Of a stretch of DNA of 64,000 nt, positions 5,251-64,000 are shown piece by piece. Made by a program: the position numbers and the translations under genes. The DNA is from Hemiscyllium ocellatum (Eukaryota): the NCBI RefSeq assembly GCF_020745735.1, contig NW_026867509.1:682001-746000 (forward strand). The letters run 5' to 3'. Position 1 is the stretch's first letter. Each line of letters starts with the position of its first letter. The notes below the pieces were generated by a model. The model searched no databases and was not told the DNA's origin. It worked only from the letters and a program-made list of their open reading frames with translations.

Positions 5251-8200
5251 TCAAAACTTACAAAACTTCATTAGGAGACTCAGTGGATATTTCAATCCAT
5301 TCTTTAACTCAGCTCTGAATTTACTCTGTGTCCCTGTATAAATAAATGGGTTGATACAGGAACTCAAAAACTGAAGCAGGTACCCAGTTTCCTGTTGAAT
5401 GAATGCCGACTGACTTAAATTGAAACCTGAGAAATAAGGTACATTCGCAATTCGGACATAGATTGTAGTTATAAAAAATAAAGAATATAACAGGATGAAG
5501 CTGCCCGAGATGGCGAAGAGTAAAACCATGGACTTTTTGCGTTTTTCCATCTCTGGATCCCTCTGATGTTCTCCACTACTCTGAATTCGGAGTCTCCTGC
5601 GGGATCTATTGGCCGCAATAATATGTCTTACAGTTAGAGCGTTCAGAAGTAAAATCAGAATGAATGGAAGACAAGGGGTTAAAATGGTACGAATCCAATC
5701 ATAAGCTGCCCATGCAGGGGACGTATAAAATATTAATTTTATGTTGCAGAACCAGGGTACATTATTAATAATGTAGATAGGTTCATTAATAAAAAACATA
5801 AAGGCACTTTTTATGCAACTGAGTGCAGTCACTATTCCAATAACCAGTGCAGCTGTCCGTTCCGTGCAGTACTTCATTTTCAGTTTCTGACAGGAAATGG
5901 CCACAAATCGATCAAAGGTAAAAGCAACTGTCAACCATGCTGAGCAATCAATTGCTGTGTATATGATGGCATCACGTAGACTGCACACTGGAGTGATGAA
6001 CAAGAAGCTTGATGGGAAGTAAATTCCAGCAACACGGTTTAATATTACAGCAGTTACCACGACCAAGAGATCTGCCCCTGCCATGGACACCAGGTAATAA
6101 ATGATGCAACTAGAAAGGCCACATTTTCTTTGAGAAAGGATCACAATCACTGTCAGGTTAGCTGTCATAGAAACATATATACATGTTTGTAGAAGTAGAG
6201 GAGAAATAGAATCTGATAACAACGGATAACGAGAACTAATCTATGAGATTTTGAATGAAATTGATATTTTTGAGACATGAACTTGAATCAAAAATCACAA
6301 ATTAACATCCTGACAGCTAGTTCTACTTGCAAAGTGATCGGCTTAGAGTGCCCCCATGGCACAATGGCGAGCCCTGATGTTTCACATCACCAGGGACCCA
6401 CGTTTGTTTCCAGCCTCGGTTGATTGCTTCGTGAGATTGTGCGTGTTTCCTCCAAGTGCTCCCTTTTCCACCCAAAGTTCCAAGTTGTACAGGCTAGCTT
6501 TATTGGCTACGCTGGATTATCACATAGTGCTAAGGAAAATTTGGGTTAACTGTGATTATTGTGGGAATACAGAGAGTGGCCAGTGGGTCTTCTGAGAATT
6601 CGAGCACAGTTAATGTTTTGAATGGCCACTCTCTGAACTTTAAGGAGAACATGATTCAAGATTTGAATACAAATAGGTCAATAGAAAAAGATTACAAATT
6701 AATATAATAACACAGATCAGAGAGTAAACTACCTCACAATCATTTTCACTAACCAGAAGTAAAAGACATTAAGATACTATAATGGTCAAATTGGCAAATA
6801 ATGTGGAAAATGTATTCTCGCTGAAAATTTGATAAATAATCCAAGAGAAATCTGAAAACTGAAGAGAAAAAGGATCATATTTTTCTGAACATTAACATTT
6901 GTCGCATCAGACAAAGTACTGTAAAATCATTCGCCATTGGAAAGATCGACAGACAAAAATCAGGAAATGTTCAGAGATTCATAATAAAAATATTGAATTC
7001 TGGGAAACAACGAAAAGTTTTGAAAATTGTTCATCTTGTACTGCTTACTTATCCAAGAAAACTCAACGCATTATTTTATTACTTTATTAAACAATGTTCA
7101 TTTTAAATTGGGAAATACGTGCTTTTTAGTTTTTAACGTCGTTCATCAAAACATGCCATCATTACATTTCTACGTATTTCCATGGAAGGCCTGGAAATCA
7201 ATAAAATATAAAAAAAATTGTATGTTGACTCAGCCAAACTGTTAATAGTTGGAAAACTTCAGTTAAAATGGAAATTGTTTGCATCTACTTGATAGAACAC
7301 TGAATGGCAGACCAGCTATGGTATCCAATCAAACATTGCAGTCAAAACCATGACTAAGATGCCGCCACAACAAAGGAAACCAGCTGATACTGATAACACT
7401 AGAAACATGGAGTGCACTCACCGAAATAATTAATTGATACAGAAAGAAAAAGGATGAGAGAAAGAAAGAGAATTTCAGAGAACGAGAAAGAGAAAGAGAG
7501 GGAGAAGGCCGTTTCATATGTGATTAAGGGGGAAGCATCCGTTACTATTTCAACCCCGAACAAAATCACCCGACCATTTTGGAGCACTCGGTGTTGGAGG
7601 CAATTGTTTAATGCTGGTCCTAAATTAGAACTTACTTCTTACTCCATCAACAATCATTCTGCCAAGAAATTTTCTAATATGTTCATCAGGCCCATGGAAT
7701 GTTAATGCATTCTGGTAGAATTTACCGTAATAAGAAATAAGGAATTTAAAATAAAAAGAAATCAACACAGCAGCATTGAGTAGATGACGAAATGAATGCA
7801 GTGTGATGTTGTGACAACCATTCATTTGGCATATTAAAAATCAAAGTCATACATTTGGAAACGAACAAGGACACAGTTTCTCGCCGACTGATAATCAAAA
7901 GTGATTACTTGCAAAAACTTATTGTAACATGTTTCGGTGTTAAAAAAGATATGGTGGTCAACTTGGTCAATTTATCCTCAAGTTGTGAAAGCGAGTATCA
8001 AAAAACGTGACTCCGAATTTTGAGTGTGACTGTTGAGTCGCAGCAATTCTCATTCTGAGCTTCTTAGTTAATATTCAATTAGCATCTTCTGTATCAGTCT
8101 GAATGAATGGAAATAACTGTTCGGGAGGACTCGATTGCAAAACGAGCCTCCTACAAACGGAACAATCCACATCCCTATCTTGGCGCCCAATAACGTAGCT

Positions 8201-13225: not shown

Positions 13226-13678
13226 ATGTGAGTCCTTGTCCTTACACTGTTTGCCTGTTTAGCCGGAAAGTACAGATCCAACAATCTTACACTGTGCCCA
13301 TTTGGTACAGAGCTTCATGAATCCATGAAAAAAAAACAGACATCGTCTCTGGCTCAGTTCCATTTTGCGGACTAATATCTCCTTTTTTTAATTTCCAGGA
13401 TGTGTCTGTCATTCAGTGGTACAGACTCCACCAGCATGCATCAAGGAAGAGTGTCAGTCTCCCACTATCGACTACATTTTCTATGGTGGTTTCTTTGCAT
13501 ATCCTTTGCAGCAGGGCGAATTCGTCAGATAAACAGACTGGAACAGATCGGGGCCAAATCTTATCTGGAGGATGGTTTGTTTTGATTTCAAATAGAATAG
13601 AAAATGCATTTTCGCCAGACGCTCAGAATGTGAAAAATACTGCCACCTCTTATTTTAAATCCTTGTACAGTTATAGCA
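13226..13678 (+). pseudogene. NAR-TCR V (IgNAR-like) pseudogene, cassette 1; leader 13226-13265, V exon from 13399
   Basis: Leader M*VLVLTLFACLA-G with decayed donor (gaaagt); acceptor tttccag. Exon reads GCVCHSVVQTPPACIKEECQSPTIDY...SSGEF.R..QTGTD..QILSGGWFVLISNRIENAFSPDAQNVKNTATSYF, with stops, frameshifts and both canonical Cys lost. It is homologous to the V at 40.9-41.4 kb (ECQS.TI motif, very short FR2-CDR2). Confidence 0.75.
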
Positions 13679-13717
13679 GTAAGTGATGTGGCTTGGCCTG
13701 GCGCGATTTCAAAACTG
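13679..13717 (+). other. Decayed 23-bp-spacer RSS of NAR V1
   Basis: gtaagtg - 23 nt (atgtggcttggcctggcgcgatt) - tcaaaactg; aligns positionally with the RSS after NAR V2. Confidence 0.45.
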
Positions 13718-14031
13718 CCTCTGCAAATTATCACAGAAGAATGTGAAAATTCGAAACCCATCACCCCTGAGCAGCCCTTATCACCCCCTCTTTCCACCAA
13801 ATCCGCTGTCCTGGTTCTCATAAAACTGGTTTGTCGTTGTTATGGTTTTTAACAATTCTAAATGCTGAGGGGATCTAGTAGTGATGTGTTTTATGGGATA
13901 ATCGTCAGTGAAACGCTGTTGGGAATGACTGATGCCTTTCAGGATTCACGAATACCTGATGGCACCCAATTCTGAAGCTCGCACCTGAAGTCGCTTTTTA
14001 CTCAAAAAGTCCACATCTGACCAATACCGGG

Positions 14032-14103
14032 AGATTTGATGCTGTGCAGAAATATTGTGTTACTGGGTGGAGCCACACAGTGGATGAGACCTAAACAAAC
14101 ATC
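14032..14103 (+). other. D segment (16 nt, 14060-14075, ttactgggtggagcca) flanked by 12-bp-spacer RSSs
   Basis: 5' heptamer tattgtg (14053-14059) with a weak nonamer; 3' CACAGTG (14076-14082) - 12 nt - acaaacatc (14095-14103). Confidence 0.8.
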
Positions 14104-14401
14104 ATACACAATTGCAATAGATATTCTGTTGACCTGTACCCACAAATGCATGCGGAGAAGTTCGCATCCTGGTTTGATTTTACTGTAATTTCATACTTCT
14201 GTTCTCTTTCTTTGACATTATTCTCAATTTCTGCGAAGAGTTCATCTCCAGTTCACGTTCTCTGAGATTTTAGAATTTCCTCAAGAACAACTTGAATTGA
14301 TGCATTGTATCAGACTTGGAATCGAGTGCACTGATTCAACTCTCCTCAATACTGACGCAGAGCCAACTGGTGATTTTCGCCCAGGACATTAAGGTGTCAT
14401 T

Positions 14402-14498
14402 AGTTCTTGCATTTGTGTGACCGAGAACATTGTCATTGTAGTGTACAATGGAACAGTAGATGGATCCAGAACGGAGGTGACTGTCACAGCTGGCAAGT
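14402..14498 (+). other. NAR-TCR J segment (14441-14492) with 23-RSS, cassette 1
   Basis: agttcttgc - 23 nt - cattgta, then VYNGTVDGSRTEVTVTA-g|gcaagt (non-GT donor); the 3' part is near-identical to the J at 42165-42214. Confidence 0.8.
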
Positions 14499-22850: not shown

Positions 22851-24204
22851 TGTGTTCAGCTTGCGTGAAGACATCCATACAGTAGTCATTAACAACATGG
22901 CATGCATTTCCAAACTAATTATTTTCTGATAGCCATCATAACTGTTGGGCATTCCAAATGACTTCTATGAACAAAGTTAATGCGCGAAGTGAACAGACTG
23001 CCTGTAGGGGAGTTCAGCAGGGTTCAATTCCAAAAAATATTTCCATAATCCTGTAGTATGGATATGTTGGGCCATTGGGGTGTTTCTACACTGTTCTCTG
23101 ACTGACTCTAACTGTTGGTTCAACGTCTTGACTGAATCAACAGGAAGTTAAGACATTATTAGTGTTGGTGGTCCTGAGTTGTCAGACCTTGTTTTGCAAC
23201 ACTGGACAATGACGTACTGAGACAAAGACTGAACACTCTTATAAACTTTCCGTGCAGCTGCCTCTCATAAACTCTCATGACAATTCGTGGTTTCCATCAA
23301 TAGGTTTCAACACTCCTATAACGAAAGAGTTATTCAGAATTGTGCAGAATGTGTTATCTCCTGAGGGGTGCCAAGTCCCAAGTGCGACCCGTAATCTGCA
23401 GAAGCGGATTTAACTTGATTCGAGCATCCACATTCAAGAATGTCTCTTTCGTGACTCAGTTTCAACATAGGTTTGTTTTATATCAATTGTCATCTGAAGA
23501 GGAACCCCGTTGTTCTTTACGGAAGTTAAATTTGCAGTAGAAAACTGCTGGCAAAGAATGAAACGTTTACATGTAGGATGAAAAATGTTAATTTCCATCC
23601 AGACGAACAGCAGAGTGACGAAAACTTTCACTGGCGGCTCGGACTTACTACTCAGTCATCAAAATATGTTTTTGATTAGGTAATAGTTTACCGATGTGTA
23701 TTAGATCCCGCTTTCTTATTGACATATTAATCAAGTCTGCATGATTCTGGATCACTGAATCGATCCTTCATCATTCTAGAACTGGAAGAAACGCCGTACA
23801 GCGGCAGTACTCAGTAACACGCAGTGCTTTTGATGTCATTATACTTTCACGAGTGAGTGATTATTACAATTACATGGCAGGCTATTACCTCTCAACCGAA
23901 TCCTACAATTCCCCATGTCGTTGGAGGATTCGGTTTAAACTCGACTGGTTGCTGCATTTTCTACACCACATCATCATTGAAACATTGAAACACCTTTGGG
24001 CATCTCAAAACGCACAAAAGAAGTTATTTGTACGTAATTCATTGAACTAACAGTATTACTCCATTTTAATCAGATTACTAACTGTTAAATTTTGGTGTTC
24101 ATACGCGAGGTATATGCTATCACCCTGAACTCGGATACCACTTCAGATCCGCCCCTATTCTCACTGTTTCGTTGACGTGCTATCATGTGCAGTTGCTGTC
24201 TGAC

Positions 24205-24243
24205 AGTTTTTGTACGGGGTCAGCCATGTTCCGAGTCTCTGTG
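24205..24243 (-). other. 23-bp RSS of the inverted TCR V
   Basis: On the minus strand: CACAGAG - actcggaacatggctgaccccgt (23 nt) - ACAAAAACT. Confidence 0.92.
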
Positions 24244-24550
24244 GGGCTCAGTGCGCAGTAATACACTGTGGAGTCTGTAAGTTCTGTTTTCAACACATTC
24301 AGCTGGATAGTGCGGTTCACATGATCAAACTTCGAGGAAATCCGGTCTTCTGGAAGTCTGTCTGCGGTGCTGATATATTGGCTTCTCTTTACGAGAAATT
24401 CCATGAAGCCGTTGGAATGCTGCCTGTACCAGAACAGGGTAGGATCGCTACTTGTTGTAGCTGTGTAATTACAAAATAACAGGACATCATCCCCCTCATT
24501 CACTGCGATTGCATCCGGTCGTTGCGTGACGGAATCTGCACAACAAAGTC
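24244..24550 (-). CDS. TCR alpha/delta V exon, open frame, inverted relative to the other V segments
   Basis: Acceptor ctacag, then GLCCADSVTQRPDAIAVNEGDDVLLFCNYTATTSSDPTLFWYRQHSNGFMEFLVKRSQYISTADRLPEDRISSKFDHVNRTIQLNVLKTELTDSTVYYCALSP; C, WYRQ and D-x-x-x-Y-Y-C are all intact. Confidence 0.93.
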
Positions 24551-24591
24551 CTGTAGGAGCCAGGAGTGAGAGTAAATTTTAAAGATTACTT

Positions 24592-37850: not shown

Positions 37851-40670
37851 TTGAGCCGGTCGCTACATACTGCAGTATATCCTCCACGTTAGGAATGCCG
37901 TTCAGAATAGAACATTCATTCCTGTCTGTTCCGCTGGATCAGATGTTTGGCGTCAGCTTTGTCCATCCAAGCAACACAGTTACAGTTTCTCTGCACTGTA
38001 AATAAGGCTTTTTCATTCAATCTTCCAAAACAGATAATATTCAATTAATGATCAATTCAACGACTTCACCCGGTTCTGATAAAATGGATTGTTCAATTTT
38101 CCATCCATCCGTCAATTTTCCTCTCCTTTCCATTGCCTGTGAAATTGATACTTAATGGAAAAGAGTCAGAGAGAGAACATTCAAAAGCACAAAGGGAGGT
38201 TGTGAAATTGATTTGAACGGACCTGATAAATTCTTGGGAAATTTCCCAGAAAATTTGAGTAAGAACAGCCGTTGGATTGTCATTGATTCATGACTTCTTA
38301 TCTCATAATCTTCACAATAATCTGGCCTCTATTGAAGGAGATACGGGCAGGGAAGGTAGAAGGACAAGAAGTGGGCTCCTATGTTCCTACTGGAATGTTG
38401 ATATAATCTCTCGAACCATCCACCTCCGTCAACCGGAAGAAACAGGGCAGAAGATCTCACACTTTCCGCTTCAAATCACCCAATGTCCTGTCTTGTGTAG
38501 CATCCTGTACTGGAGGTATCGATTACCAGTCATATCAAGTAGTTCTTTCCAGCACGGAAAGAATGTCTTCGGCCCAGAATCAATGCATCAGCTTGAGTGC
38601 CTCTACTCAAGAACTGGATCCAAAGCCTCTCTGTGAGACGGAACACCTTCATTACTTGGTCATGTTTGTAAGATTCAAACAAAGTGCAGTGGTATTCGGA
38701 TAAAACTACAGCCTGGTTCCAGCAAAGAAAGGATGCCTTCAACCACTCCTCTGTCCGTGTTACATTCCCATTCTTTACACTTCACTCTTCAATTTATACT
38801 GCCTCACGTCGTTCTTCAACAAACATATTGTTACAGAATTTTGACACCAGGGATAATAAAATGAAACCAGAACCTCTTAGCTCTGTAATAAAAGCTCTGA
38901 CAAAGTACAGTGACCTGATCCAGTAAACGGATAATACAGCCACTTAGTTCCAGCTCTATTGTAACAATCTGTGTCTTTGGACTTACATTGGTACAGCTTA
39001 TTGCATTCAATCAGTGATCTGGTCTCAATCAATAACAACTTGAAGACTGAGCTTTCACGTAACAAAATGGCTCGGAGTTTCACAGGTACTTCAGGCCATA
39101 CTAAATGACATGACGAAAATCTTGGCCAAAGTGATCAGTTGGAATGAGTGTTTGCAAGTAGGACAATGAAAGAAAACGTTTTCAAATATTTCAGGAGAGA
39201 ATTCCAGATTTAATGATCCAAACAGTTCAAGGCATGGTCAGCAACAGTAGGATATTCAAAATCACTGACGGAGTTTCCGGAAACGGTGTTTCTATGCACG
39301 TGGGCACATAGCCCAAAATATGCGGATACTGGCGATCTGAACTAATGACATTCAAGTTTTAGAGAAATTCATCAGGTCTGGCAGCAACTATAGATCACGT
39401 TGCAAAAGTCAATCCTTTGAATCGGAACATAAAATATTACTGTCTCTGTGAATGCTGCCAACCCTAATGAGTTTCTCAAACACTTCCTCTTTTAATAAAA
39501 GTCTTATACTATTCTTGTTCATTGACGTGTTATAAACTGAGTGCCACCCTGTGTAGTGAGTAGGTATTCACTTTAACAGACTTAAACTCCTCTGAATCTC
39601 AATGTTACACTCAGAACAGGTTTTAGTAGAGGTTTGAGGGGAAAACAAACAAAAAGCATCAACACTTAAACCTGGAAAGAACAGAAATGATGGCAGTCAC
39701 AACAGATCACACATCATCAGTTTTTGGAGAAGTCTGAGATGAAATTCCTTTAGAATGGTCACCTCCCACCACGAGCACTAAACCCTGGTCCAGAGAGGGA
39801 GAGTAATGAGGCTTCGTCAGATTAATTATTGGAACAGTCGGATTGTACCGACGTGAAGCTCAGACAGCATTCTCCACAGTTCAGAAGAATGCGTGGTAAT
39901 CTTGTTAAAACTTGGGACATCTTTCTGAGTTAAATTTGAACAGCAGTCACAAAGGACTGTTGCAGAAACTGCCTGTTTAAGTTTCTGAGAATGTTTGTTC
40001 GTCTTGTAAATTATCTATGTTCAACATAACTTTCTCACTGGATGATATCATTTTGTATTCCGAGCCTTAATTGCAAGACCGAGTGAAGCCATAAGGTTTC
40101 AGGTTTAGTTTTCCTGATCAGATGTTTCACCTGGGTCCCACTGAGGTGTTCAGTATTAAATCATCTCCAGAAATGTTGAATTAACATGAGATCGGGGCGA
40201 GGCAGGGAGTTATAAGAAAGTGATGCTGGGAACGATCGAGTAGTGAATATTGTTCTTGGTTTCTCCCAGCATCATCGCTCGATATTCTTTGCTCAACACA
40301 CAAGACTAAATAAAAACACAGACTGAGTACCCAGCTAATTGACGCGTGGCCAGGAAGGGCTGCAGTGATCACTGGCAGAAAATGTCCCTACCATCATCCC
40401 CACACCACCCCTTGGGCTTTGAGCGAACATGGGAGGTGATTACTACGTCGCTTACAGAGCTGGTGAAGTGACGTAAAACTATAGGCTACCTCTTCAAACC
40501 TGTCTCAAGTACAGAGATCTTGAAGTAGCTCGGCCGATCAAATACATCATGGACACTGCAGCTAGCAAATCGACTCCATCAATCTGAATAACTTCCGTCC
40601 AGGTCCCCATACAGGCTTCTGGAGTAATCTTCCCTTTCCCATCATCAAACTACCAGATCCAAACACAGGA

Positions 40671-41417
40671 ACGCGGGTACACTTCTTCGTTTGATCCTCT
40701 GTGTCTGTTTACCTTGTGAGTATCGATCGCAGAAACCAACTTTGCGTGAAATCAAAACTTCACTGCTGTCGATTTCGCCCGCATTCCAGCAGAGTCTGCA
40801 ATTTTAACCATGTTGTGTGTATCAGTTCTAAAGTCCACTCACTTCCCTCTGTTTAAATTCCAGGTTATTTCAGTCAGTCCGTGACACAGAGCCTAGTAGT
40901 GGTGAATAGGAAGGAGTGCCAGTCTCTCACCATCAACTGTGTTTTTAAAAATCATAATTCTTGTCATTACTTTGAGAGTGAACAATTCTTTCGTCAAACG
41001 CAGGCAGCGCAGGGAATGCGAGCGGACAACAAGCGATGGAAGATGTGTTGTGTTCAGTCATTCCAGCAGAATCTGCAATTTTAACCATGTTGTGTTAATG
41101 TCCTAATGTCCGCTCACTTCTCTCTGTTTAAATTTCAGTCAGTCCGTGACACAGAGCCTAGTAGTGGTCAACAGGAAGGAGTGCCAGTCTCTCACCATCA
41201 ACTGTGTTTTGAAAGTCATAATTCTTATCACTATTTTGAGAGTGAATAATTCTTTAGTCAAACGCAGGCAGCGACGGAATGGAAGCGGATCACAAGCGGT
41301 GGGAGATGTGTTGTGCCCCTGAATAAAGCAAAAAATACATTTTCGTTGTAAATTTGGGATATCAGAGCTGAAGACACCTCCACCGATTACTGTAATGCTC
41401 GATACTGGTCCGGTATA
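40671..41417 (+). pseudogene. NAR-TCR V (IgNAR-like) pseudogene, cassette 2, with an internal 277-bp tandem duplication
   Basis: Decayed leader ending ..LILCVCLP-t|gtgagt (40715); acceptor at ~40863. Composite reading: CYFSQSVTQSLVVVNRKECQSLTINCVFKNHNSCHYFESEQFFRQTQAATEWKRITSGGRCVVPLNKAKNTFSL*IWDIRAEDTSTDYCNARYWSGI. The short C-to-C distance and ISxGGRxVxxxNK motif are IgNAR-like; F replaces the FR2 Trp. Confidence 0.88.
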
Positions 41418-41456
41418 TACATTGATGGGCCTCGGCTTCCCGTCGCTCCAAGACTC
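41418..41456 (+). other. Decayed 23-bp RSS of NAR V2
   Basis: tacattg - 23 nt - ccaagactc. Confidence 0.5.
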
Positions 41457-41746
41457 TGACGGGAGACTATTATAGAAAGAAATTGAAAACGGAGGCAATC
41501 TATCCAGAAATTCCCACATTGCTGCCTCGCAGCTTCTGTCCCAACGTCTGAGTCATTTTAAAAAAACATTCTGTGTTTCACAGATGCCAAGTGTGTTCGA
41601 ATGGTGATCCCGCTGTCAAGACTTGTGTGGATGAATGGAACTGATCACAGTTAAAGGATACTGACGTGGGTGGATATCCTGTTCTAACAACTGGAATTGG
41701 GAATTTCAGTTCAGCTGTAATGTCCCAAATCTCAACTAGTCTTGGG

Positions 41747-41818
41747 AAGTTTTACACAGATTTATGGCACTGTGCCAATTTGGAAGAAAGCACAGTGAAA
41801 GGAGCCCGAACAAATAAC
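41747..41818 (+). other. D segment (16 nt, 41775-41790, ccaatttggaagaaag) flanked by 12-bp RSSs
   Basis: Perfect CACTGTG (41768-41774) and CACAGTG (41791-41797); 3' spacer 12 nt then acaaataac; 5' nonamer weak. Confidence 0.85.
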
Positions 41819-42125
41819 TCTGCACAATTAAAATATAAATTCGCCAGCACCAATATCGATTGTTAGCTTGAAGTTCACTTCGCTGTAATGTCGGCTGATA
41901 CCTTAACACTCCCTTGCAAGCACATATTTCTTTTTTCGATTCTTCTCATCTGATATGATGTGAACATCCACCTTCTGTATTCCAGTGCCATTTGACAGAA
42001 GATCAGGTGACCTGAGACAAAGGAAACTTGACCACAGAGAATATTGCCTATCTATCCAAATCTCATGAAACAATAGTTTGGTCAAGCATCGTGTTAATGA
42101 TTTTTCGATCGTTTGAGGTACAACT

Positions 42126-42220
42126 GGTCCTTGTATATTGGAGGCTGAGAGGAGCATGATTGTGTCATTATGATTAAGTAGATGGATCAGGAATGGCCGT
42201 GACTGTCACAGCTGGTAAGT
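42126..42220 (+). pseudogene. NAR-TCR J segment (42165-42214) with 23-RSS, cassette 2
   Basis: ggtccttgt - 23 nt - gattgtg, then HYD*VDGSGMAVTVTA-g|gtaagt; contains an in-frame TAA. Confidence 0.85.
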
Positions 42221-42929
42221 GACTCTGCATTCCATCTTGCTCTGATTTATGTTGCTGAACGATCGATTTATTGTTATTATCAAAGTAACTAAAGCAAATA
42301 CTTTAGAAGGAACGGATTCTGTTACAGTGTCCAAGTTGAGAGCAGAATATTCGAGTCAGGTCCTGATTTCCACAAGCAAAAGAATGAATGACACCTGGCC
42401 CTAGGTCGGTGGTTTCACTGCACCTCGGGCATCTCTGGTCTAACAGGTCAATAGAGGGTGACCATCAATATGGCGAGCAGGTGCTTAAATGAATGATGAG
42501 TACCGACCGTCTGGACTCCATTCCCGGAGTTATCTGTGATCGATGTTGCTCCTTCTGTTGCTTAGATCACAAGAGAAGGCTCACTGAGCTTTGTACCAGG
42601 CAGAACGTCAATCCCAAATTCGAAAAGTTCAACAAAAAACATTGTCCCACCAGAAAATCAGAAGATTATTCAACGAATTTCAGATACAAGAGACCTGGGT
42701 GTAAGTCAAGATGAAGACGTATATTTGAAGAATCGTTGTCAGGAATGATCGACTTGCTATTTATTTTCAGTTCATTTCATATGTGCATTCATCTAACCAA
42801 TCAAGTTCCCATTTTTCCAGCCTCAGGAATGCATGTGAAACTAGAAAGAATGTTTGCTTATTTAATTTGGTCTTTTGAGACATCGGTTTGCTGTAAACCA
42901 AATCTTAAACAAGGAATAAAGCGGGATAA

Positions 42930-44765
42930 AAGGGTTATGAAATAGCTTTAGCAAGCAGAATTAATGAGAATGCCAAAGTGCTTTGTTCTTATATAAGAAG
43001 CAAGCGAGTAACTAGGGAAAGGATTGGTCCACTAAAGGATAATGAAGTAAGGCTGTGTGCCGAACCTGAGAGAATGGCTGAGATTCTGAATGGTTACTTT
43101 GCATCAGTGTTCACTGAGGAGAGGAACATGATGCGTCTTGAGATTAGAGATAATTTTTTTATTAGTCTGGATCACGTTGACATAAGCAGGGAAGATGTGT
43201 TGGGTCAGCGAGAGGTTATCAAAGTAGACAAATCCCTAGCACTGGATGGGATCTATCGCAGGTTGCTGAGGGAGGCGAGAGAGGAAATAGCTGGGGACCT
43301 GACATATATCTTTGTGGCATCCTGAAATACAAGTGAGGTACTGGAGGACTGGAAGGTTGATCATGCTGTCCCCTTGTACAAGAAGGGTAGTTGGGATATT
43401 CTGGTTAACTACAGACCAATGAGCCTGACGTTGGTGGTGGGAAAGTTGCTGCAGAGGATAGTGAAGGATAGGATCTATTTATATTTAGAAAAGAATGGGC
43501 TAATCAGTGACAGGCAACGGGGTTTTGTGCGGGGAGATCGTGCATTACCAAATTAATAGAGTTCTTCGAGGAAGTGAACAAGTTGATGGATGAACGAACG
43601 GCTGTTCATGTCATATACATGGACTTTATTAAGGCGTTTGATAGGGTACGCCATGGTAAACTAATAGAGAAAGTGAAGTCACATGGTGTGCATGTGCTCT
43701 CGCTAGTTGGATAAAGAACTGGTTGAGCAAAAGGAGACAGAGAGTAGTCGTTGAAGGGAGTTTCTCGAAATGTAGAAAGCTGACCAATGGAGTTCCACAG
43801 GGGTCAGTGTTGAGGTCACTGTTGTTTGTGATGTACATAAATGATCTGGAAGAGGGCACTGTTGGCATGATCAACAAACTTGCAGATGACACGACGATTT
43901 CAGAAGTAGCAGAAAGCATAATGGACTGTCAGAGAATACAGGGGGATACAGATAGGCTGGAGAGTTGGGCGGAAAGGTGGCAGATGGTGTTCAATGCAAA
44001 TAAATGTGAGGCGATGAATTTAGGCAAGACTAATTCTCGAGCGAATTCTACAATGAATGGAAGAGCCTTGGGAAAAGTTGATGAGCAGAGAGATCTGGGA
44101 GTGCAGGTCCATTGTACCCTGAAGGTTGCTGCACATGTGGGTAGGGTGGTCAAGAAGGCATATAGTATTTTTGCCTTCATTGGACGGGATATTGAGTATA
44201 AGAGCTGGCAAGTCATGTTAAAATTGTATAAGATATTGGTTCGGCCGCATTTACAATACTGTGTACAATTCTGGTCTACACATTAGAAAAGAATGTGGAC
44301 GCTTTGGCGAGGTTGCAGAGATGGTTTACGAGGATGTTGCCTGGTATGCAAAGTGCTAGCAATGAAGAGAGGTTAGGTTTATTTTCATTAGAAAAAAAAA
44401 AGATTGAGGGGGGACCTGATAGAGGATTACAAAATCATGAAGGGTATAGACAGGGTGGATAGAGACAAGCGTTTTCCCAGGCTGAAGGATTCAATAACGA
44501 GAGGTCACGCGTTCAAGGTGAGAGGTGGAAAGTTTAAGGGGGTTACACGCGGCAAGTACTTCACATAAAGGGTGGTGGGTTTCTGGTACGCGTTGCCAGC
44601 AGAAGTAGTAGAGGCAGGCACGGCATATTCATTTAAGATGCGACTGGACAGATGCGTGAGTAGGTGGGGAGCAAAGGGATACAGATTTTCAGGAATTGAC
44701 CTTCAGGTTTGGGCAGTACATTTTGAGAGGCTGAGGCTTGAAGGGCGGAAAGACCTGTTTCTAAG
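42930..44765 (+). mobile_element. Decayed CR1 LINE (~1.8 kb of ORF2) inserted between NAR J2 and its supporting V
   Basis: GPLKDNEVRLC..MAEILNGYFASVFT; NYRPMSLT; NGVPQGSVL..LFVMYINDL; ADDT; RPHLQYCVQFWS. Confidence 0.93.
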
Positions 44766-45076
44766 CTGTAAATTTTCTTTGTTCTTGGATTATTTGTCTT
44801 CATAGACTGTCTCCTCAACTGACAGCGCAGCAGTTGTCTCACGAGCTCTGCCTGCCAGTTTGGTCTGAAAAAGCATTACCCATAAAAGCTGGGACCACTC
44901 CATCTGCCTAGCCAATTATTCCAATGGAATAAAGAACGCGTCAACATCATTCTCATCAAAGGGTTTTGATATGCTGATAACACATTAAAACATCACTGTT
45001 GAATCAGTTTCCAAGACATGTTTTGGCACATCATAAGAAGAAAATATGTAAAACAAAACGTCACCTCATCACCTCG

Positions 45077-45378
45077 TTAGATTAGATTTAGATTAGACTT
45101 ACAGTGTGGAAACAGGCCCTTCGGCCCAACAAGTCCACACCGACCCGCCGAAGCGCAACCCACCCATACCCCTACATTTACCCCTTACCTAACTCTACGG
45201 GCAATTTAGCATGGCCAATTCAACTGACCCGCACATCTTTGGACTGTGGGAGGAAACCGGAGCACCTGGAGGAAACCCACGCTGACACGGGGAGAACGTG
45301 CAAACTCCACACAGTCAGTGGCCTGAGTCGGGAATTGAACCCAGGTCTCTGGCGCTGTGAGGCAGCAGTGCTAACCAC
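45077..45378 (-). mobile_element. HE1-type shark SINE, young copy
   Basis: Minus strand gtggttagcactgctgcctcacagcgccagagacctgggttcaattcccg...; CR1-like tail gggccgaagggcctgtttccacactgtaagtctaatctaa; high identity to the 52645 copy. Confidence 0.9.
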
Positions 45379-45457
45379 AAGAGAGAACATATCAAAGTAT
45401 AGCATCAAGAAAATAAACAGAAACATTCCTGTGTTTTGCATTTTCTCCTTTCAACAG

Positions 45458-45805
45458 AGGATGAATAAGTGATGATGCTGAATGTCATCCTAAATATTCC
45501 TGTTCCCTGGTTTCTCGGGGTCGATCCCTACAAATATCTCCTGCCGGTGACACGGTTACTTTAAGCTGTGATTATTCAGGGATCTGCCCGTATGCAGTTT
45601 ACTGGTACTGTCAGTCCCTAGGACACTCTCCCAAATACACGATTCAAAGACAGACGTCAGGAGAGCAGAATAAAGAAAATGGTGAAGGCATACGAATTTC
45701 TGCATCCATTGATCCTGCAGTGAAAATCGGTTGGTCAATGATCTCACAAAAACAAGCAAATGACTCCTCTATGTATTATTATATACAGAGTCAGCACTCA
45801 GCACA
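45458..45805 (+). pseudogene. Leaderless 'supporting' TCR-delta V of NAR-TCR, pseudogene
   Basis: Acceptor tttcaacag in phase with J2 and no leader exon. Reads ED E*VMMLNVILNIPVPW.. then (frameshift) AGDTVTLSCDYSGICPYAVYWYCQSLGHSPKYTIQRQTSGEQNKENGEGIRISASIDPAVKI...NDSSMYYY. It has an extra CDR1 Cys; the second canonical Cys is lost. Confidence 0.88.
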
Positions 45806-45844
45806 GACAGTTGTATGCAGTACGGAGAGAGCTGCACAAAAACC
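45806..45844 (+). other. 23-bp RSS of the supporting V
   Basis: gacagtt - 23 nt - ACAAAAACC (perfect nonamer). Confidence 0.8.
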
Positions 45845-47642
45845 TGAACACGCTGGGAATTACACATGGAGTTCACAGATCACTGAGAGAGCTCTCAGAT
45901 AACCGATAAATTCGATGTCATTCAGTAAAATGGAGCCAAGTGGATGAGCACTGCCTCCACAAAACATCTCTCCCTGTGTCATACATGCTCAGTAACGGAA
46001 TCTACACAATGCACTGCAGAAACATAGAACTTTGGAACATGAGTGAGCTTCGTGGACACTGTGAATAGATTTTGAATATGACCGAATAATCTTAAATTAT
46101 TTGAATTATAGATGCGACTCCATCTTTATTCGTGAGTTACCAGACCTCATTATTATCTTGCTGATGCCTGTCAACTTAAATGCCATTCTGGCTATGACTC
46201 CATTATTACTTCCCCAGGTACTAAATATTACCTTACTCGCTCTATCTCATTCATCATTGTTTTTTTTTAATTGAAACTAATGTTTATGCCAGTGTCACAC
46301 GCTTATCGGATTCACACATTCAAAATGTTCTCTCTGGCATATTTTGGTTCTAAGTACGCTCTGATATGCTCACTGTTTCAACAGACTCTGGTTGTAATGT
46401 ATCTAGAACGTGCCTCCTTGATGAACATACTGAGAACACAATTATTAAATGCACGAGATCCTACCATTGGTTGTGCAATTGCAATGTTTAAGGAATCAGT
46501 TTCTGTCTCTAATTATTTTATAATTTCTGTCATTCCACAGTTATTTTACAAACAGTTCATTTATTTATTTCCATGAGACTAGATGGTGAATGAACTAATA
46601 GTATGTGTTAATGTTTATGCTTAGTTTCACTGCTTAATTTCTATCATTTTTGCTCACATTATGTCGCAACTGGTCTCTGTTTGTAATAAGCTACACCACA
46701 TCTCTGTTTCTATTAAACCAGGCCCTATTTTAGTTGTTCTTTCTCTGCAGCGTGTTGATGGCACCATATATTCACATACTATTTATTGGTTTCGATCGTG
46801 TGTGAAATCGTTTGGAACCTGGATAAAATGATACGCCATTCTTTTAATATTACAAGACCTCTGTCCCTCTGAAAACTGTAAATGGTTTAATCTCATTTGC
46901 TCATGCACAACGATACGACGCTTCCTGCAATAAATTAACCATGCCTGTGTAGTCGATGAACTTGGCACTATACTTTGAAGCAAACTTCCAATCACTCCTT
47001 AACCTGATGTTTCTCTCGTTACATTAAGTATTGAAAATGGTCAACTGTTTTTGCAGCAGAAACGCTCGACAGAACCTTCAGCATTTGAACGCCTTCTTGC
47101 ATTTGTGATTCATCGGACCAAATGAAGAATTTTTCAGATTCAACGTTACTTAAATTTGCATTTGATGGTCGGCACAATGTTGAGGTGGTTTGTTTGTTGA
47201 ATGTGATTTTCCAAACCTTCAACTGTAAATTTATGGAAACGTTGAAAAAATGTTAAAATATTAGGCACTAAAACACATATAAGTGAAGCCAACGATGAAG
47301 TAAATTGACGCTTAAAATGAAGAAAAATCTGGGAAATGGCAGAAATGGGAAGAAGAAAGAGGCTCAACTAAGTATTTACCAGCAGCGGAATCAGTACTGA
47401 AAGACTCAACAACATATTTTGTGCATTGTGAGCCTGTCCCCGAAGGGAAATACAGTTATTCGCCTTGTTGGAAGGCATGAGCAGTGACGTAATCTCTTTG
47501 TTCAAAGAAATGTAAGTAAGCTGTGTGCTGTACCTTAATTGTCCCTCTTGCGACTATCACTCTGAATAAATGAGGGGCCATTTGAATATGTCGCAGAGCA
47601 ACCCTCCACAGCGACAACAACTCCTGCAGTTTCTGAACGAAG

Positions 47643-49813
47643 ATGCATGAGGCAGTCATTGCCCCCTTCTTTGTAATTTGCTATTCAATTCTCGCTGCTG
47701 TTGGTGGCCCTGGTAAGTCACTGATTCTCGAAAAAATCGATTACCTTATCATGTATTTCCAGTTTATTTCCTTTCCTTCCAGGATTTGGTAGAATCTTTC
47801 CAATATGCAACTGTTAATTTTAAGGACCTTCAGTGGGTCTCTAATCTATATAATAAATTAGGAAATAACATCTGTGCTCTGAAAAATAATCGTAAATTAC
47901 TTCCAATTTCATTATAACGAAGGGAATTGTGCTCTTCAATTTTGCATGCTGTGCAGTTATAGAAAAAAGTAACTATGAGACGCTGAACTGAAATTTGTGG
48001 TGAATGACAATGCATGAACGTTAATGTGTAATATTGTCACAGACTAAGGTCCAGCCCAATTCGGTGAAATGCAATTTAGTTGATTGTAGGATGAATTGTT
48101 TATCACCGTGTCAGAATTTATACTATGTGCTCTGGAATGATGTAATCGGGTATTGAGTTCCCAATGGACGATAACATTGTTTTGTTCAAATGAACGTCAT
48201 AAGAAAAGAGCAGAAACCGAGCTGCTCAGGAGAATGTTCCATCAATTTGGGGACGGTGGGGTGGGGTTTACTCAATACACCTATAATCAACACAATTCGC
48301 GATATTAATTTGAGGAAGGAACAGAAGATAAAATAAGTTAACATGAGATTTCAGACAGATGTATGATGTTACGGGAATGACCAGATGCTGGTGCTTCAGA
48401 AAAATTGAAGCATGTGATTGTGAAGGGTGAGACACCACTGGTGAGCAGCCGAAGTCGGTCAATATTTATGGATTAAAGGTTGGCTATGCTTGCTATGAAT
48501 AATTTCATGACAACCACATTATGCTGTTTATCCCGAATTGAACAATAGCTCCTGGCCTTAACTCAGTGACAGGAGAGCGATGTTTATTCCTGAGCTGATC
48601 ACACTGACAGTTGATGTGGAGATGCGGTGTTGGGTTGGAGTGGAGAAAGACAAAACTGACATGACCCCAGGTTATAGCCCAATGGGTTTACTTGAAATAA
48701 CAAGAATTTGAAGTGCTATTCCTTCGTCAGGTGCATTGACAGATATTTGATGCTGCATGTGTTGAACAACACTTGACAGTTATTTCAAAACAGGCAGAGA
48801 CTCGGGTTGGCAGGTTTATGTTCAAAGACTGTTTCATAAAAAAAAATGCATATGTCAACAGCCGGTGCTTTGACTAATTCATTACTGTCACTCTCTTTTG
48901 ATTTATCACAGCCAACTTGCTGGCGATCATAATTCTATCTCATGGAAGATGCGGTCTCTCCCGATGCATCACCTACTACCTGGTGGCAATTGCGGTGAGT
49001 GACTTCCTTGTCATCACCAACGCAGTTATCCTCAATCGAATCAGCCGCTTCTATTTTCGGCAAAGTGTCTTGTCCACCACTCCTGTGTGCACTCTCAGTG
49101 TCATATTGGTCTATGCTACACTCGACTGTTCGGTCTGGCTGACAGTCGCCTTTACCATCGACCGTTTTGTGGCCATCTGCTATCAGAGACTGAAGACAAG
49201 ATACTGCACCAAGAAAACTGCATCGCTCGTTATTGGAATGATCTGTGTCCTGAGTTGCATCAAGAACGCTCCTTTCTACCTTGCATTCCAGCCCTTGTTC
49301 ATTTTGGACGGGATACCCTGGTTTTGTAACGTCAAAGCAAACTTCTATACCTGGCCAGTCTGGCAGTTTCATGATTGGTTGTTTCGGGTCTTGAACCCTT
49401 TTCTCCCGTTCTCCCTCATTCTGTTGCTCAACGTCCTGACCATAAGACACATCCTAGCGGCCAACAGGGCCCGCAGGAGGCTCTGTGGTGCTGCTAAGGG
49501 ACAAGATCCAGAGATGGCTAATCGCCAGAGGTCCATTGCCTTACTTTTTGCCATCTCTTTAAGCTTCCTACTCATGTGGTCTCCTCTTCTCGTACATTTT
49601 ATATATGTGCGGATTAAAGATGAGAGTTACTTTAGTGGGCTGGATTTCAGTGATCCGTTGTATACCTTTGAAGAGACGACCAACACACTCCAGATACTTA
49701 GTTCTTGCAACAACGTCTTCATCTATATGGTCTCTCAGAACTTGTTTCGAAAGCAGATGAAGAAAATTCTAATATACCCCTTTGTCACCCTCGCCAGGTC
49801 CTTTAAACGATGA
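47643..49813 (+). CDS. Intact two-exon class A orphan GPCR, GPR139-like shark family (323 aa); exon 1 47643-47712, exon 2 48912-49813
   Basis: Exon 1 MHEAVIAPFFVICYSILAAVGGP-g|gtaagt (70 nt, same size and phase as the paralog) joins cacag|CCAACTTG, giving GPANLLAIIILSHGRCGLS. Motifs SDFLV, AFTIDRFVAI, PFLPF, SSCNNVFIY; 972 nt ending TGA. Confidence 0.9.
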
Positions 49814-52644: not shown

Positions 52645-52946
52645 TTAGATTACTTACAGTGTGGAAACAGGCCCTTCGGCCCAACAAGTCCACACCGACC
52701 CGCCGAAGCGCAACCCACCCATACATTTACCCCTTACCTAACATTACGGGCAATTTAGCATGGCCAATTCACCTGACCCGCACATCTTTGGACTGTGAGG
52801 AGGAAACCGGAGCACCCGGAGGAAATCCACGCAGACACGGGGAGAATGTGCAAACTCCACACAGTCAGTCGCCTGAGGCGGGAATTGAACCCGGGTCTCT
52901 GACGCTGTGAGGCAGCAGTGCTAACCACTGTGCCACCGTGCTGCCC
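52645..52946 (-). mobile_element. HE1-type shark SINE, young full-length copy
   Basis: Minus strand gggcagcacggtggcacagtggttagcactgctgcctcacagcgtcagagacccgggttcaattcccgcc...; same tail as the 45077 copy. Confidence 0.92.
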
Positions 52947-55264: not shown

Positions 55265-55788
55265 ACATTTCGACTATTATTAATTCCTCATTCTGCTGCA
55301 TCTCTCTTAACAGGTACATTATCCACTCTGTAATAATTCTCACTTGTCTGCGACACTGACGACTTGCTATTTAATCGTGCTCTCCCTTCACTTCCATTGT
55401 GTTCCGTTACATTGATTCTAAAATGTAACGCTACAAAATGTTTTTCAAATCTAAATTTATGCAGTTTTGGTCGTGTGTGCACGAGTAAAGTACAGAGACT
55501 CAGATTAAAGAAAACTTAGTAAGAGTTAACATTAGTTATTAGTTTTCTGCTACCTCCTACTTTTTTTGTAACTGTGCTGTCAGGGCCCTGCAGAGTTACC
55601 TCCATCCCACCACATGGTAACCGTTTCAAAGCAGACGGCGTTGGCGATCGATTTTCTGCATTTCTGCATGTTTTGAACCGTGAGGGGGATGTCACCATCA
55701 GCGAACTGTGGCTGTCCGACTGGTCGGTGTATTTCTGCAGGCTGTGAGACACAATGACAGGAGCCAGAATGATCCTTGTGCCAAACAT
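55265..55788 (+). pseudogene. TCR alpha/delta V pseudogene: leader 55265-55313, V exon 55465-55749, RSS 55750-55788
   Basis: Leader relic (T)FRLLLIPHSAASLLT-g|gtacat without ATG; the 5' exon is frameshifted (VNISY*FSATSYFF); the 3' exon reads ADGVGDRFSAFLHVLNREGDVTISELWLSDWSVYFCRL*; cacaatg - 23 nt - gccaaacat. Confidence 0.8.
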
Positions 55789-60930: not shown

Positions 60931-62352
60931 TTTGAGGCCTTCAAAACTGGAAGATGAGCCGTCTTCTGTCAACTACAAAGCCTTTCATTTTTAATCAGTG
61001 TTGTTACTGTATAGTAAGAGATTAATTATTGACAGTTACATGGTCAACGTAAACACTCCCATCATGCAAAAGAATAATTTGCATTATCTTTCGAAATGTG
61101 GAGATTTCTGGAAGTGTCAAACAACATTGAACAGACGTGTTCTGTTTCCGTTACAGCTCTTCATTGCTGCATATATAAAATGGCGACTTTAGAGAGGAAA
61201 TCACAGTTAAACCTGTACCTGATGGGTTGAAGTCCACAATAAGTTCGAGAGAACGACAGATTTTGCTTCCAGCACGATTTTTTTTGAAATAAATGGATTT
61301 TAATCCAAACCAGTACTCCCTTCAAATACTAGCACGAATTCCAGATGTTTGTTTGATTAACTAAATTCAAGTTACCACGTTGCATGAGCAGAATTCAGAT
61401 CATGAAATGACATTGTTATTCCAGAACGAGAGAATTTGTGATCCGGTGCACAACATTGATGTTAACAAAGCTGGACTTCGGCAATGACGAGTTTGGAGCT
61501 TCCTTTTCTCAAAATATTAGTGCAATAGTCTTGCCTACAAAACCTCTAAATGCACAAGTTGCCACAACATTTTGCTCCATAATTGTGCCTCATTATTATT
61601 GTTATTATTCCTGTCATGAAATACTTCACTCCACACTTGTAAAAAAGCGGAATTTATATCGAGTTCAAATTGAAGCCTTTCTTCCCTTCTTTGAATTTAA
61701 ACTTTCAGACACACTTGTCAATTTATGTCGGTTTTAAGCAAGTTAAATCACCGAAGAAGCGATGATAATCCGACCTTCATTGACTGTGAAATTAAAATAC
61801 AGATAAGAACCTGATTCACACTCTTTGTGCATACTAATAATTTTGGTGCAAAGGTTTTCATTTCCATTTTGCATCATAGTGAGAATTGCGTTTTGTCCAT
61901 TGTAACTTACGCAGTTCATAGAGCAGTTACTCGTGTTACTGCTGAAATGGGACCATTCAATGAATTGGATTTCCTACACATTGTATTTAGAGAGACACGA
62001 GAAAAGGGCATTTGTGTTCAGACACAGTATATAATTGTGATGTAGAGAGCTCTGACGATTGGGAGAGTCAGACAGGTTCTCGGGGGACTGCAAATACATA
62101 GATGCAGACAAAGACAGTATATGGAAACAGGAAAACAACCGGAAAACGTAATATTCTCTGAACAACAGTGATTGGTGTTCTACTTTCGTCAGCTCTGAGC
62201 GGTCAAGCAATCCTGTTTCATCCGAAACGCATCCTCTCTTTTTCCCCAGGACAAAGTGTGCACCTGATCTGACTTCACTGTTCCACATCGGATTGGAGTT
62301 CTTATCTTATTTCATAGACTCCGTTATTACTGTGCAAATGTGGAGAAAGAAA

Positions 62353-62784
62353 ATGTTCCTCCCGTACTCCTTACTAATAATAGTGGTGGTGCTGCGTGGT
62401 AAGTCTATGTTTAAGCATGCAATATCTCCTACACGAGTGATGTTCCCTCCGAGACATTCGATATATTTGTCTTTTTGCAGGAACTAATGGCGAAGATGCA
62501 GTTTTCCAAGATCCACACGAAGTAATGGTCCTGGAGCGAGAGAATATAACATTGAATTGCAGCTACTCGACATCTTCTTTTAAAGCTCTGTTCTGGTACA
62601 TTCAGCATCCTGGGGATGAACCGAGATATTTCGTGAAAATATACAGCACGGGGAAGGTAGAAAGGTCTAAAGAATTTCAAGACAGATTCTCTGCTGTTTT
62701 GAACAGGCAAAGCCAGACGTTTTCTTTAAAAGTCTCTCCAGTTCTTCTCACCGATAGCGTCATGTATTTCTGTGCCATGGAGCC
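62353..62784 (+). CDS. Intact TCR alpha/delta V gene segment: leader 62353-62398, V exon 62481-62784
   Basis: MFLPYSLLIIVVVLR-g|gtaagt, 82-nt intron, tttgcag| then GTNGEDAVFQDPHEVMVLERENITLNCSYSTSSFKALFWYIQHPGDEPRYFVKIYSTGKVERSKEFQDRFSAVLNRQSQTFSLKVSPVLLTDSVMYFCAMEP. Confidence 0.95.
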
Positions 62785-62822
62785 CACACTGCTGCAGATA
62801 TCGTCGTCCCTGCACAAAAACC
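62785..62822 (+). other. RSS of the intact V (22-nt spacer, 23-class)
   Basis: CACACTG - ctgcagatatcgtcgtccctgc (22 nt) - ACAAAAACC. Confidence 0.92.
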
Positions 62823-64000
62823 CACACTGAGAGTTCCAATTTATGTCCAGTTGAGGGTGCTGTCACAACGATAAACCAAAACTATAATCCAGCCTCAAGA
62901 ACATTAGACACAGAATCATTCATGAAATATGAAAACAAAGCACAACACTTCTTCTCAAATTTCGCTTGCAATCGCCGGAACATGAAGTTTATAAATTGTG
63001 ATGTTGTACACTGAAGATGTTGCTCGTTGATGAGGTTATGTTGGCCTTTTTTTATATATATTTCTTTTTAGACGTGTCGTAAAGGAAGAGATTCGAACTG
63101 TTCTGAAGGCATCTCATTGAAAAGGCATTTCAACTTTGTTTCAAGAAAAATCTATCTTGCGCAATAAAAGTCAGTAGGCCATTATCCCACTTCAGGTTTT
63201 GGTTTGGTTGGAGCAAGCAATCAATTTGAGGCTGCTGGTCAAATAAACAGCTTCATGATGATCCTTTCTCTTTCTCTTGACATCTCTTCTGTACGAACTT
63301 CCGTTTTATTTTACCTTTTTTTTCAAGGGGAAATTTATGGGGATGCTCCACGTATTTGGAATAGCATCACTAAGTTGCAATAGTGTCCATTGGGTTTTCA
63401 GATAGTTTAAGATACTCTCAATTCTGTTCTCTTTTGTTTGCGTTTCGTTCTTTAGTCTGCAAATAAATTCTATTTTGTTTAAAAATGAGTGATTGGACCA
63501 GTTGCATCACACCTAAAATATTCACTTACAGCTGTTGAAAGCAACCAGAAAAGTTAGGATCTGGGCTGCATTCCTGTAATGATTTGTTGGGTTATGGTCT
63601 GGTCCAGAAAAAGATTCATGTATATTTAGACATCTTTCAAATGTATTTTCCTGTATACTTTACTTGCATCTCTTTCTTCCTGTCTACTGTCTGTTTGTTA
63701 ATCCCGTTGAAAGCTGTTGCTATTCAAGATTATCTGATCAGAACGACACTGCTTCATGAATATTTACATAAAATGAGCACATTTTACAAGTTAAGTTTGA
63801 AATTTTCACTCTCGAGAGCAGACTCCCCACAATTCTGATTGTTTTCTCCGATATCCGTTCATTGCTTTCTGACGATAATCATGAAATAATACTCACCTCT
63901 AAATTGACCGCACAATTGCTACAAGCCCATCTCGACAATATAAGCATTATGCAGGCATTAATGGCGATTGGGATTGGTCTAGTTCATTGAGAGCTAGTCT

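Follow-up and report, generated by a model that had tools for sequence, protein, structure and literature searches.

The question raised by positions 40673-45844 of the DNA studied here, a 64,000-nucleotide stretch of Hemiscyllium ocellatum (contig NW_026867509.1, hereafter the window), is whether they hold a complete cassette for NAR-TCR, a kind of T-cell receptor (TCR), and whether such a cassette could still work. In the passages that cite Criscitiello, Saltis and Flajnik (2006), NAR-TCR is described as a doubly rearranging TCR delta chain of cartilaginous fishes (PMC1845163, PMC3149040, PMC12227049), and it is reported as present in all of them (PMC3149040, PMC1845163). Its two variable (V) domains come from separate rearrangements of V, diversity (D) and joining (J) segments and are carried on the TCR delta constant (C) domain (PMC1845163, PMC5931798, PMC12227049). 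The NAR V has a typical leader and an a-b loop Cys, while framework region 2 (FR2) is without the Trp of the WYRK motif; the supporting V-delta has no leader and a conserved Cys in complementarity-determining region 1 (CDR1) (PMC1845163). Judged from its sequence, the stretch is very probably a germline NAR-TCR cassette in a shark TCR alpha/delta V region that has decayed to a pseudogene. The cassette is a further copy of an already known kind, an ordinary pseudogene that is complete in layout.

An earlier note, made from the letters of the window, had proposed a complete cassette in the order leader, NAR V, D, J and supporting V-delta on the forward strand. This order holds, and the ends given there fit the leader and the nonamer of the recombination signal sequence (RSS) of the supporting V. 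The parts are as follows.

40673-45844, + strand: whole cassette, with leader, NAR-type V, one D, J with splice donor, repeat-filled intron, and leaderless supporting V-delta with RSS
40673-40715, + strand: leader exon remnant, reading AGTLLRLILCVCLP, with phase-1 donor GTGAGT at 40716 and start codon lost
40782-41321, + strand: tandem duplication (copy A 40782-41058, 277 bp; copy B 41059-41321, 263 bp), found by a repeat search
40864-41058, + strand: NAR V exon copy A, FR1-CDR1-FR2 (..KECQSLTINCVFKNHNSCHYFESEQFFRQTQ..), acceptor ccag intact and in phase with the leader
41136-41417, + strand: NAR V exon copy B, with the sole FR3/CDR3 part, ending ..EDTSTDYCNARYWSGI
41418-41456, + strand: NAR V RSS, TACATTG-23-CCAAGACTC, heptamer without its first C
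41747-41818, + strand: D segment (41775-41790, 16 nt) with its two RSSs, from an RSS scan
42126-42214, + strand: J segment (42165-42214) with a 23-spacer RSS, GGTCCTTGT-23-GATTGTG
42215-45495, + strand: J-to-supporting-V intron, 3.28 kb
~42930-44800, + strand: retrotransposon without long terminal repeats (non-LTR), 5'-truncated, decayed, CR1/jockey-like, Pfam RVT_1 E 1e-8
45088-45378, + strand: short interspersed element (SINE), 291 bp
45496-45805, + strand: leaderless supporting V-delta exon, Pfam V-set E 6.7e-8
45806-45844, + strand: supporting V RSS, GACAGTT-23-ACAAAAACC, heptamer without its first C, nonamer perfect

An intact paralogue serves as the reference throughout, and no other evidence for the cassette is stronger. 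It is the locus of protein P0001, which we call L001 (H. ocellatum JAJGRY010000101.1; gene model XP_060678048.1, 'uncharacterized protein LOC132808244'). Over ~11 kb, window 38944-49808 and L001 4144-16047 run collinear at 66-71% identity. The NAR part of L001 is intact, with an ATG leader, an open V, a V RSS of CACAGTG-23-CAAAAACTC, a 12/12 D, and a J with its 23-spacer RSS and donor. So is its 3' part, which consists of a 2.45-kb intron, the acceptor cag|AT TCC and an open supporting V with both Cys and an RSS of CACACTG-23-ACAAAATCT. The existence of this intact copy in the same genome, together with the reports of NAR-TCR from all cartilaginous fishes, means that the earlier note overstated its case in presenting the window cassette as the clearest sign of the system in a further genome.

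The 3' V segment at 45.5 kb also supports the identity of the cassette as a two-V receptor. Its frame is open over 103 codons, Cys23 (45567-69) and the Trp are present, and the CDR1 Cys is found in YSGICPY. A word-index protein search with this V returned no match; an exhaustive HMMER search against 1.84 billion representatives returned 211 matches. In 13 of the 15 best of these, a NAR J (or NAR V-J) stands directly before the matched V and the query matches the second domain. The domain E-values of these 13 NAR-linked proteins are 1e-26 to 1e-36, while all other proteins score 1e-14 or weaker. Twelve of the 13 share the CDR1 motif YSG(F/S/L/I)C(Q/H/P)Y, P0014 having W in place of the C. P0005 (Mustelus asterias) among them is a complete delta chain that includes the C domain and a membrane anchor, and P0008 is a rearranged transcript-type sequence running from a NAR CDR3-J through a supporting V and a D-J to C; further NAR-linked matches are gene models of H. 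ocellatum and Chiloscyllium plagiosum. In a maximum likelihood (ML) tree of 94 V domains, the window V and the 13 NAR-linked domains form one clade (14 rows, support 98/93), in which the window V is sister to the supporting V of P0001, i.e. of L001. The next clade out is the NAR-TCR-associated V family of the elephant shark, which includes the two-V protein P0109, and support for both clades together is 99/98. The two conventional V segments of the window fall elsewhere in the tree. In addition, no hydrophobic ATG exon with a splice donor was found within 700 bp upstream of the supporting V in either the window or L001. The proposed two-V identity, which a separate leader exon or a grouping with ordinary V-delta families would have contradicted, is therefore upheld on both counts.

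One might still take the 45.5-kb V for an ordinary V-delta or V-alpha segment whose leader lies in the same exon, and which merely has a dead NAR V-D-J upstream of it. Just upstream of and within the exon start there is indeed a hydrophobic stretch led by an ATG (MMLNVILNIPVPWFLG). However, it is out of the V-domain frame in both the window and L001, and it leaves only ~15 residues before Cys23. Moreover, the relatives, including the rearranged transcript-type sequence, join the NAR J exactly at the homologous 'D-S-S' exon start. With the V placed inside the NAR-linked clade and carrying the CDR1 Cys of supporting Vs, we consider this alternative very improbable, and a leaderless supporting V remains the reading that we follow.

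The 5' half of the cassette agrees with the NAR-TCR hallmarks as well. The leader exon remnant is hydrophobic, in phase with V copy A and 74% identical to the leader exon of L001 (MGALLGLVLCLCLP). Behind it, the duplicated stretch takes in the leader intron's end together with the NAR V exon up to two thirds of its length, so that L001 6125-6388 is represented twice; the two copies are 89% identical, so the duplication is old and not an assembly artefact. The earlier note mentions neither this 277/263-bp duplication nor the damaged but recognisable 23-spacer RSSs behind both Vs. The V pieces translate as ..SQSVTQSLVVVNRKECQSLTINCV.. and ..FFSQTQAATEWKRITSGGRCVVPLNKAKNTFSL*IWDIRAEDTSTDYCNA.., and Pfam does not recognise them in their broken state. 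By tblastn, copy A matches the NAR V domains of P0001, P0005 and P0012 with E-values of 1e-11 to 1e-12. Copy B, which is 78% identical to the L001 V exon, matches the N-terminal domains of two-V (NAR-TCR) proteins with E-values of 1e-18 to 1e-23. The a-b loop Cys is present in both copies (KECQSLTINC; relatives NECESLTITC or KECQSLTITC), and FR2 reads FFRQTQ in copy A and FFSQTQ in copy B, without the WYRK Trp, as in relatives (FFKQTQ or FFRQTQ).

The RSS behind the NAR V aligns base for base with CACAGTG-23-CAAAAACTC of L001, 20 nt of the spacer being identical. A reading frame 3' of the NAR V (..YIDGPRLPVAPR) was considered as a germline-joined J and ruled out, because the alignment to L001 identifies it as the 23-bp spacer of the V RSS read as protein. 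Downstream, the single D is flanked by a 5' RSS with a 12 spacer (heptamer CACTGTG, 41768-74) and a 3' RSS of CACAGTG-12-ACAAATAAC (41791-41818), a 12/12 layout that matches both the homologous site in L001 and the window's other cassette; the J with its 23-spacer RSS is likewise conserved with both. A conserved block at 41560-41660 was tried as a second D and rejected, as it is without usable signals in the window and in L001. The spacers of the NAR part thus run V-23, 12-D-12, 23-J in both the dead window cassette (41418-42164) and intact L001 (6494-7263). This spacer order resembles that of mammalian IgH.

The antibody IgNAR invites comparison at this point. Its V clusters have a related single-domain V fold and the SLTINC motif, as does the NAR V of the window, and among solved structures the V fragment is matched best by IgNAR V domains, via SLTINCV. 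In IgNAR, the V retains its FR2 Trp, three D segments are used and constant exons follow; none of these traits is seen in the window cassette. An origin of the V-D-J part from an IgNAR cluster is scarcely credible: the structure matches reach only E ~1 against 1e-18 to 1e-23 for the N-terminal domains of NAR-TCR, FR2 is without Trp, the Cys typical of NAR-TCR stands in the a-b loop, there is a single D here against the three of IgNAR, a splice donor and a supporting V come after the J instead of C exons, and the locus has TCR V segments. The window cassette is like NAR-TCR in the hallmarks of both Vs, a D and a J of its own, a J donor, a 23-RSS behind the supporting V and a location among TCR alpha/delta Vs.

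We next consider whether this NAR-TCR cassette could work. The earlier statement that every part carries an inactivating lesion is correct for the leader, the NAR V, the J and the supporting V, but the D and both its RSSs show no lesion. Aligned to L001, the leader ATG is reduced to a 2-nt CG remnant at 40674-75, and there is no in-frame ATG upstream of it back to the stop at 40625. Copy A of the NAR V has a +1 frameshift near 41005, after which the reading enters the duplication junction. In copy B, a 10-bp deletion took the acceptor, a 1-nt deletion lies near 41214, and there are two in-frame TAA stops. The J reads HYD*VDGSGMAVTVTA, with an in-frame TAA and a change of Thr to Met in the DGSGT motif (relatives xDGSGTVVTVTA). 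In the supporting V, the second Cys (Cys104) has become Tyr (TAT, 45780-82). The stops that had probably been counted as lesions of this V lie in the intron; its real lesions are the acceptor, Cys104 and the RSS heptamer. That RSS was located by anchoring its nonamer on CACACTG-23-ACAAAATCT of L001. A second, decayed RSS-like unit stands behind it at 45863-45901 (CACATGG-23-TCTCAGATA); behind the L001 V (L001 10140-10260) there are several such heptamer-23-nonamer units of ~60 bp in tandem, the second of which is its counterpart in the alignment.

The junction between J and supporting V was examined with the same alignment. The J has kept its donor (GTAAGT at 42215), which is of phase 1, like the leader-to-V intron. 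Compatibility of phase, as claimed earlier, is found only at 45495|45496, the homologous exon start, where the G of the J and the AT of the V form Asp; relatives read ..VTVTA|DSS.. across this point, including P0008. The junction that had been named instead, 'ag|AG GAT' at 45456-57, lies 38 nt upstream of it and opens a frame that reads E-D-E-stop, its fourth codon being TAA, and that is not the V-domain frame. However, splicing at 45495|45496 is not expected in the window copy, as its acceptor at 45494-95 is AT and not AG ('..catcctaaat|attcc', against '..cattctgcag|attcc' in L001).

Could the cassette be functional, with its apparent lesions being errors of sequencing or assembly? Although the supporting V is open over its 103 codons and the D, the J donor and three of the RSS nonamers or spacers look good, we give this explanation almost no credence, since the lesions number at least 10, are independent and varied in kind (a duplication, deletions of 1 nt and 10 bp, point changes) and are spread over 5 kb, and errors would not yield two duplicate copies diverged by 11%. 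The window cassette thus differs from a working NAR-TCR in that it would be unable to function as it stands, with no ATG, a broken V, a stop in J, damaged heptamers, a lost acceptor and Cys104 changed to Tyr.

The intron between J and supporting V had been said to be expanded by a CR1 element and a SINE; a LINE-type element with an RVT_1 match and a SINE do lie there, the latter being absent from the corresponding site in L001. The reverse transcriptase (RT) of the retrotransposon is broken across several frames. Among its relatives, those with a name are bird and turtle RTs labelled 'mobile element jockey-like', at ~40-44% identity; these matches fit CR1, although they do not amount to a formal classification. 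No homologue of the element is found in the L001 intron when the two loci are aligned. The SINE is absent from L001 between the flanking blocks 45093<->9638 and 45435<->9708. Further copies occur at window 52645-52928 (93% identical) and at L001 63-324, and an Rfam scan of 40000-46500 gave no match, so that the SINE is without a curated RNA family there. Outside two short similar islands the introns of the window and L001 are unrelated, so that each lineage acquired repeats of its own.

The comparison between the two loci also bears on their history. They share the order of parts, the flanks and a GPR139-like gene, and their supporting Vs are sisters, but the cassettes are ~30% diverged and their introns carry different repeats. 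In L001 the cassette is open with good signals and the receptor gene is broken, whereas in the window the cassette is dead and the receptor open reading frame (ORF) is largely open. Two observations weigh against a decayed TCR delta cassette. First, the ratio of nonsynonymous to synonymous substitution rates (Ka/Ks) of the supporting V against L001 is 0.52 and not 1; that of the 3' part of the NAR V is 0.95, on few sites. The value of 0.52 could mean that much of the branch predates the death of the cassette, or that the test is uninformative; the two ratios are weak evidence, compatible with death well after the duplication. Second, no C-delta lies within the window, and it is the flanking V segments and the relatives that link the cassette to TCR delta.

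The window is vertebrate DNA and contains no N. Its flanking V segments and other neighbours of the cassette are as follows.

24186-24578, - strand: conventional V, RSS CACAGAG-23-ACAAAAACT
62338-62827, + strand: conventional V including its leader exon (MFLPYSLLIIVVVLR, then a GTAAGT donor), RSS CACACTG-23-ACAAAAACC
48911-49810, + strand: GPR139-like seven-transmembrane (7TM) receptor ORF, 3 kb downstream of the cassette

The two conventional segments are TCR alpha/delta-type Vs and look intact; they stand on both sides of the cassette (V exons 24186-24578 and 62441-62827), and both are recognised as Pfam V-set and have a 23-spacer RSS. Their opposite strands imply inversional joining for one of them. 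A second NAR-TCR V-D-J, more decayed, is found at 13226-14498. Its leader ATG is followed by TGA, its V has a changed Cys, its D has an RSS of CACAGTG-12-ACAAACATC, and its J is VDGSRTEVTVTA with a GC donor; downstream of it on the + strand, no supporting V was found ahead of the next cassette. The conventional Vs and this second NAR V-D-J place the window in a TCR alpha/delta V array. At 55616-55744 (+ strand), a short V fragment resembling FR3, which matches a supporting V with a tblastn E-value of 4e-4, is probably a V relic.

The receptor ORF downstream agrees with the earlier description of a fossil copy next to a G protein-coupled receptor. It is 92% identical to a Chiloscyllium punctatum protein and 74% identical to H. 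ocellatum paralogues. The first ~23 codons of its relatives were not found in frame at the 48911-49810 ORF, and the homologue in L001 carries stops. The GPR139-like family is hugely expanded in sharks and rays. A second receptor ORF (7tm_1, 323 aa) lies at 5251-6222 on the - strand.

How a cassette of this kind works, and where the window copy fails, can be set side by side. In a working cassette, as described in the literature, RAG joins the NAR V (23-RSS) to a D (12/12) and a J (23-RSS) that belong to it alone and, separately, joins the supporting V-delta (23-RSS) to a distant D-delta and J-delta. A single chain of three domains then results when leader, NAR VDJ, supporting VDJ and C-delta are brought together by RNA splicing. 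In the window this path is blocked at nearly every step, by the missing ATG, the split V, the stops in V and J, the V heptamers, the acceptor and the second Cys. The first C of the heptamer is required for RAG cleavage. With this C lost from both V heptamers, V-to-D joining and joining of the supporting V would be disabled, and only D-to-J joining could persist, since the signals of D and J are still good. To judge from these lesions, the window copy would make no protein. It may have arisen when a unit of at least ~11 kb, the GPR139-like receptor gene included, was duplicated, and a long interspersed element (LINE) and the SINE may have entered the intron after the cassette had died.

A comparable arrangement is known outside the cartilaginous fishes. 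TCR mu of marsupials and monotremes is a TCR chain with two V domains, the outer of which is antibody-like (PMC3457774). It works like NAR-TCR, yet the likeness is convergent and not homologous, as its V domains are related to VH and the marsupial supporting V is germline-joined (PMC3457774).

In public annotation, NAR-TCR models go under names that have nothing to do with this receptor (uncharacterized protein; immunoglobulin superfamily member 2-like; T cell receptor alpha chain MC.7.G5-like), and the germline gap between V and J is modelled as an intron, as in L001 6001-10197 and in the protein records.

Taken alone, the finding has little weight, because the receptor type is known and widespread in cartilaginous fishes and the window copy is a pseudogene. 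Its relatives do reveal that automatic annotation names for NAR-TCR genes are misleading. As a pair, the window and L001 show where exactly the germline junction lies (cag|AT TCC) and how the RSSs are laid out (V-23, 12-D-12, 23-J, supporting V-23). A practical use is that the window copy, a dated-looking fossil, can serve when live and dead cassettes of the H. ocellatum genome are counted. We also put forward, as a tentative idea that is somewhat more likely to be wrong than right, that NAR-TCR cassettes and GPR139-like genes have been co-amplified as a unit of ~11 kb or more in the shark TCR alpha/delta V array, with reciprocal decay of the two, and that the good D and J signals of the dead window cassette could still permit RAG-mediated D-J joins and excision circles in thymocytes.

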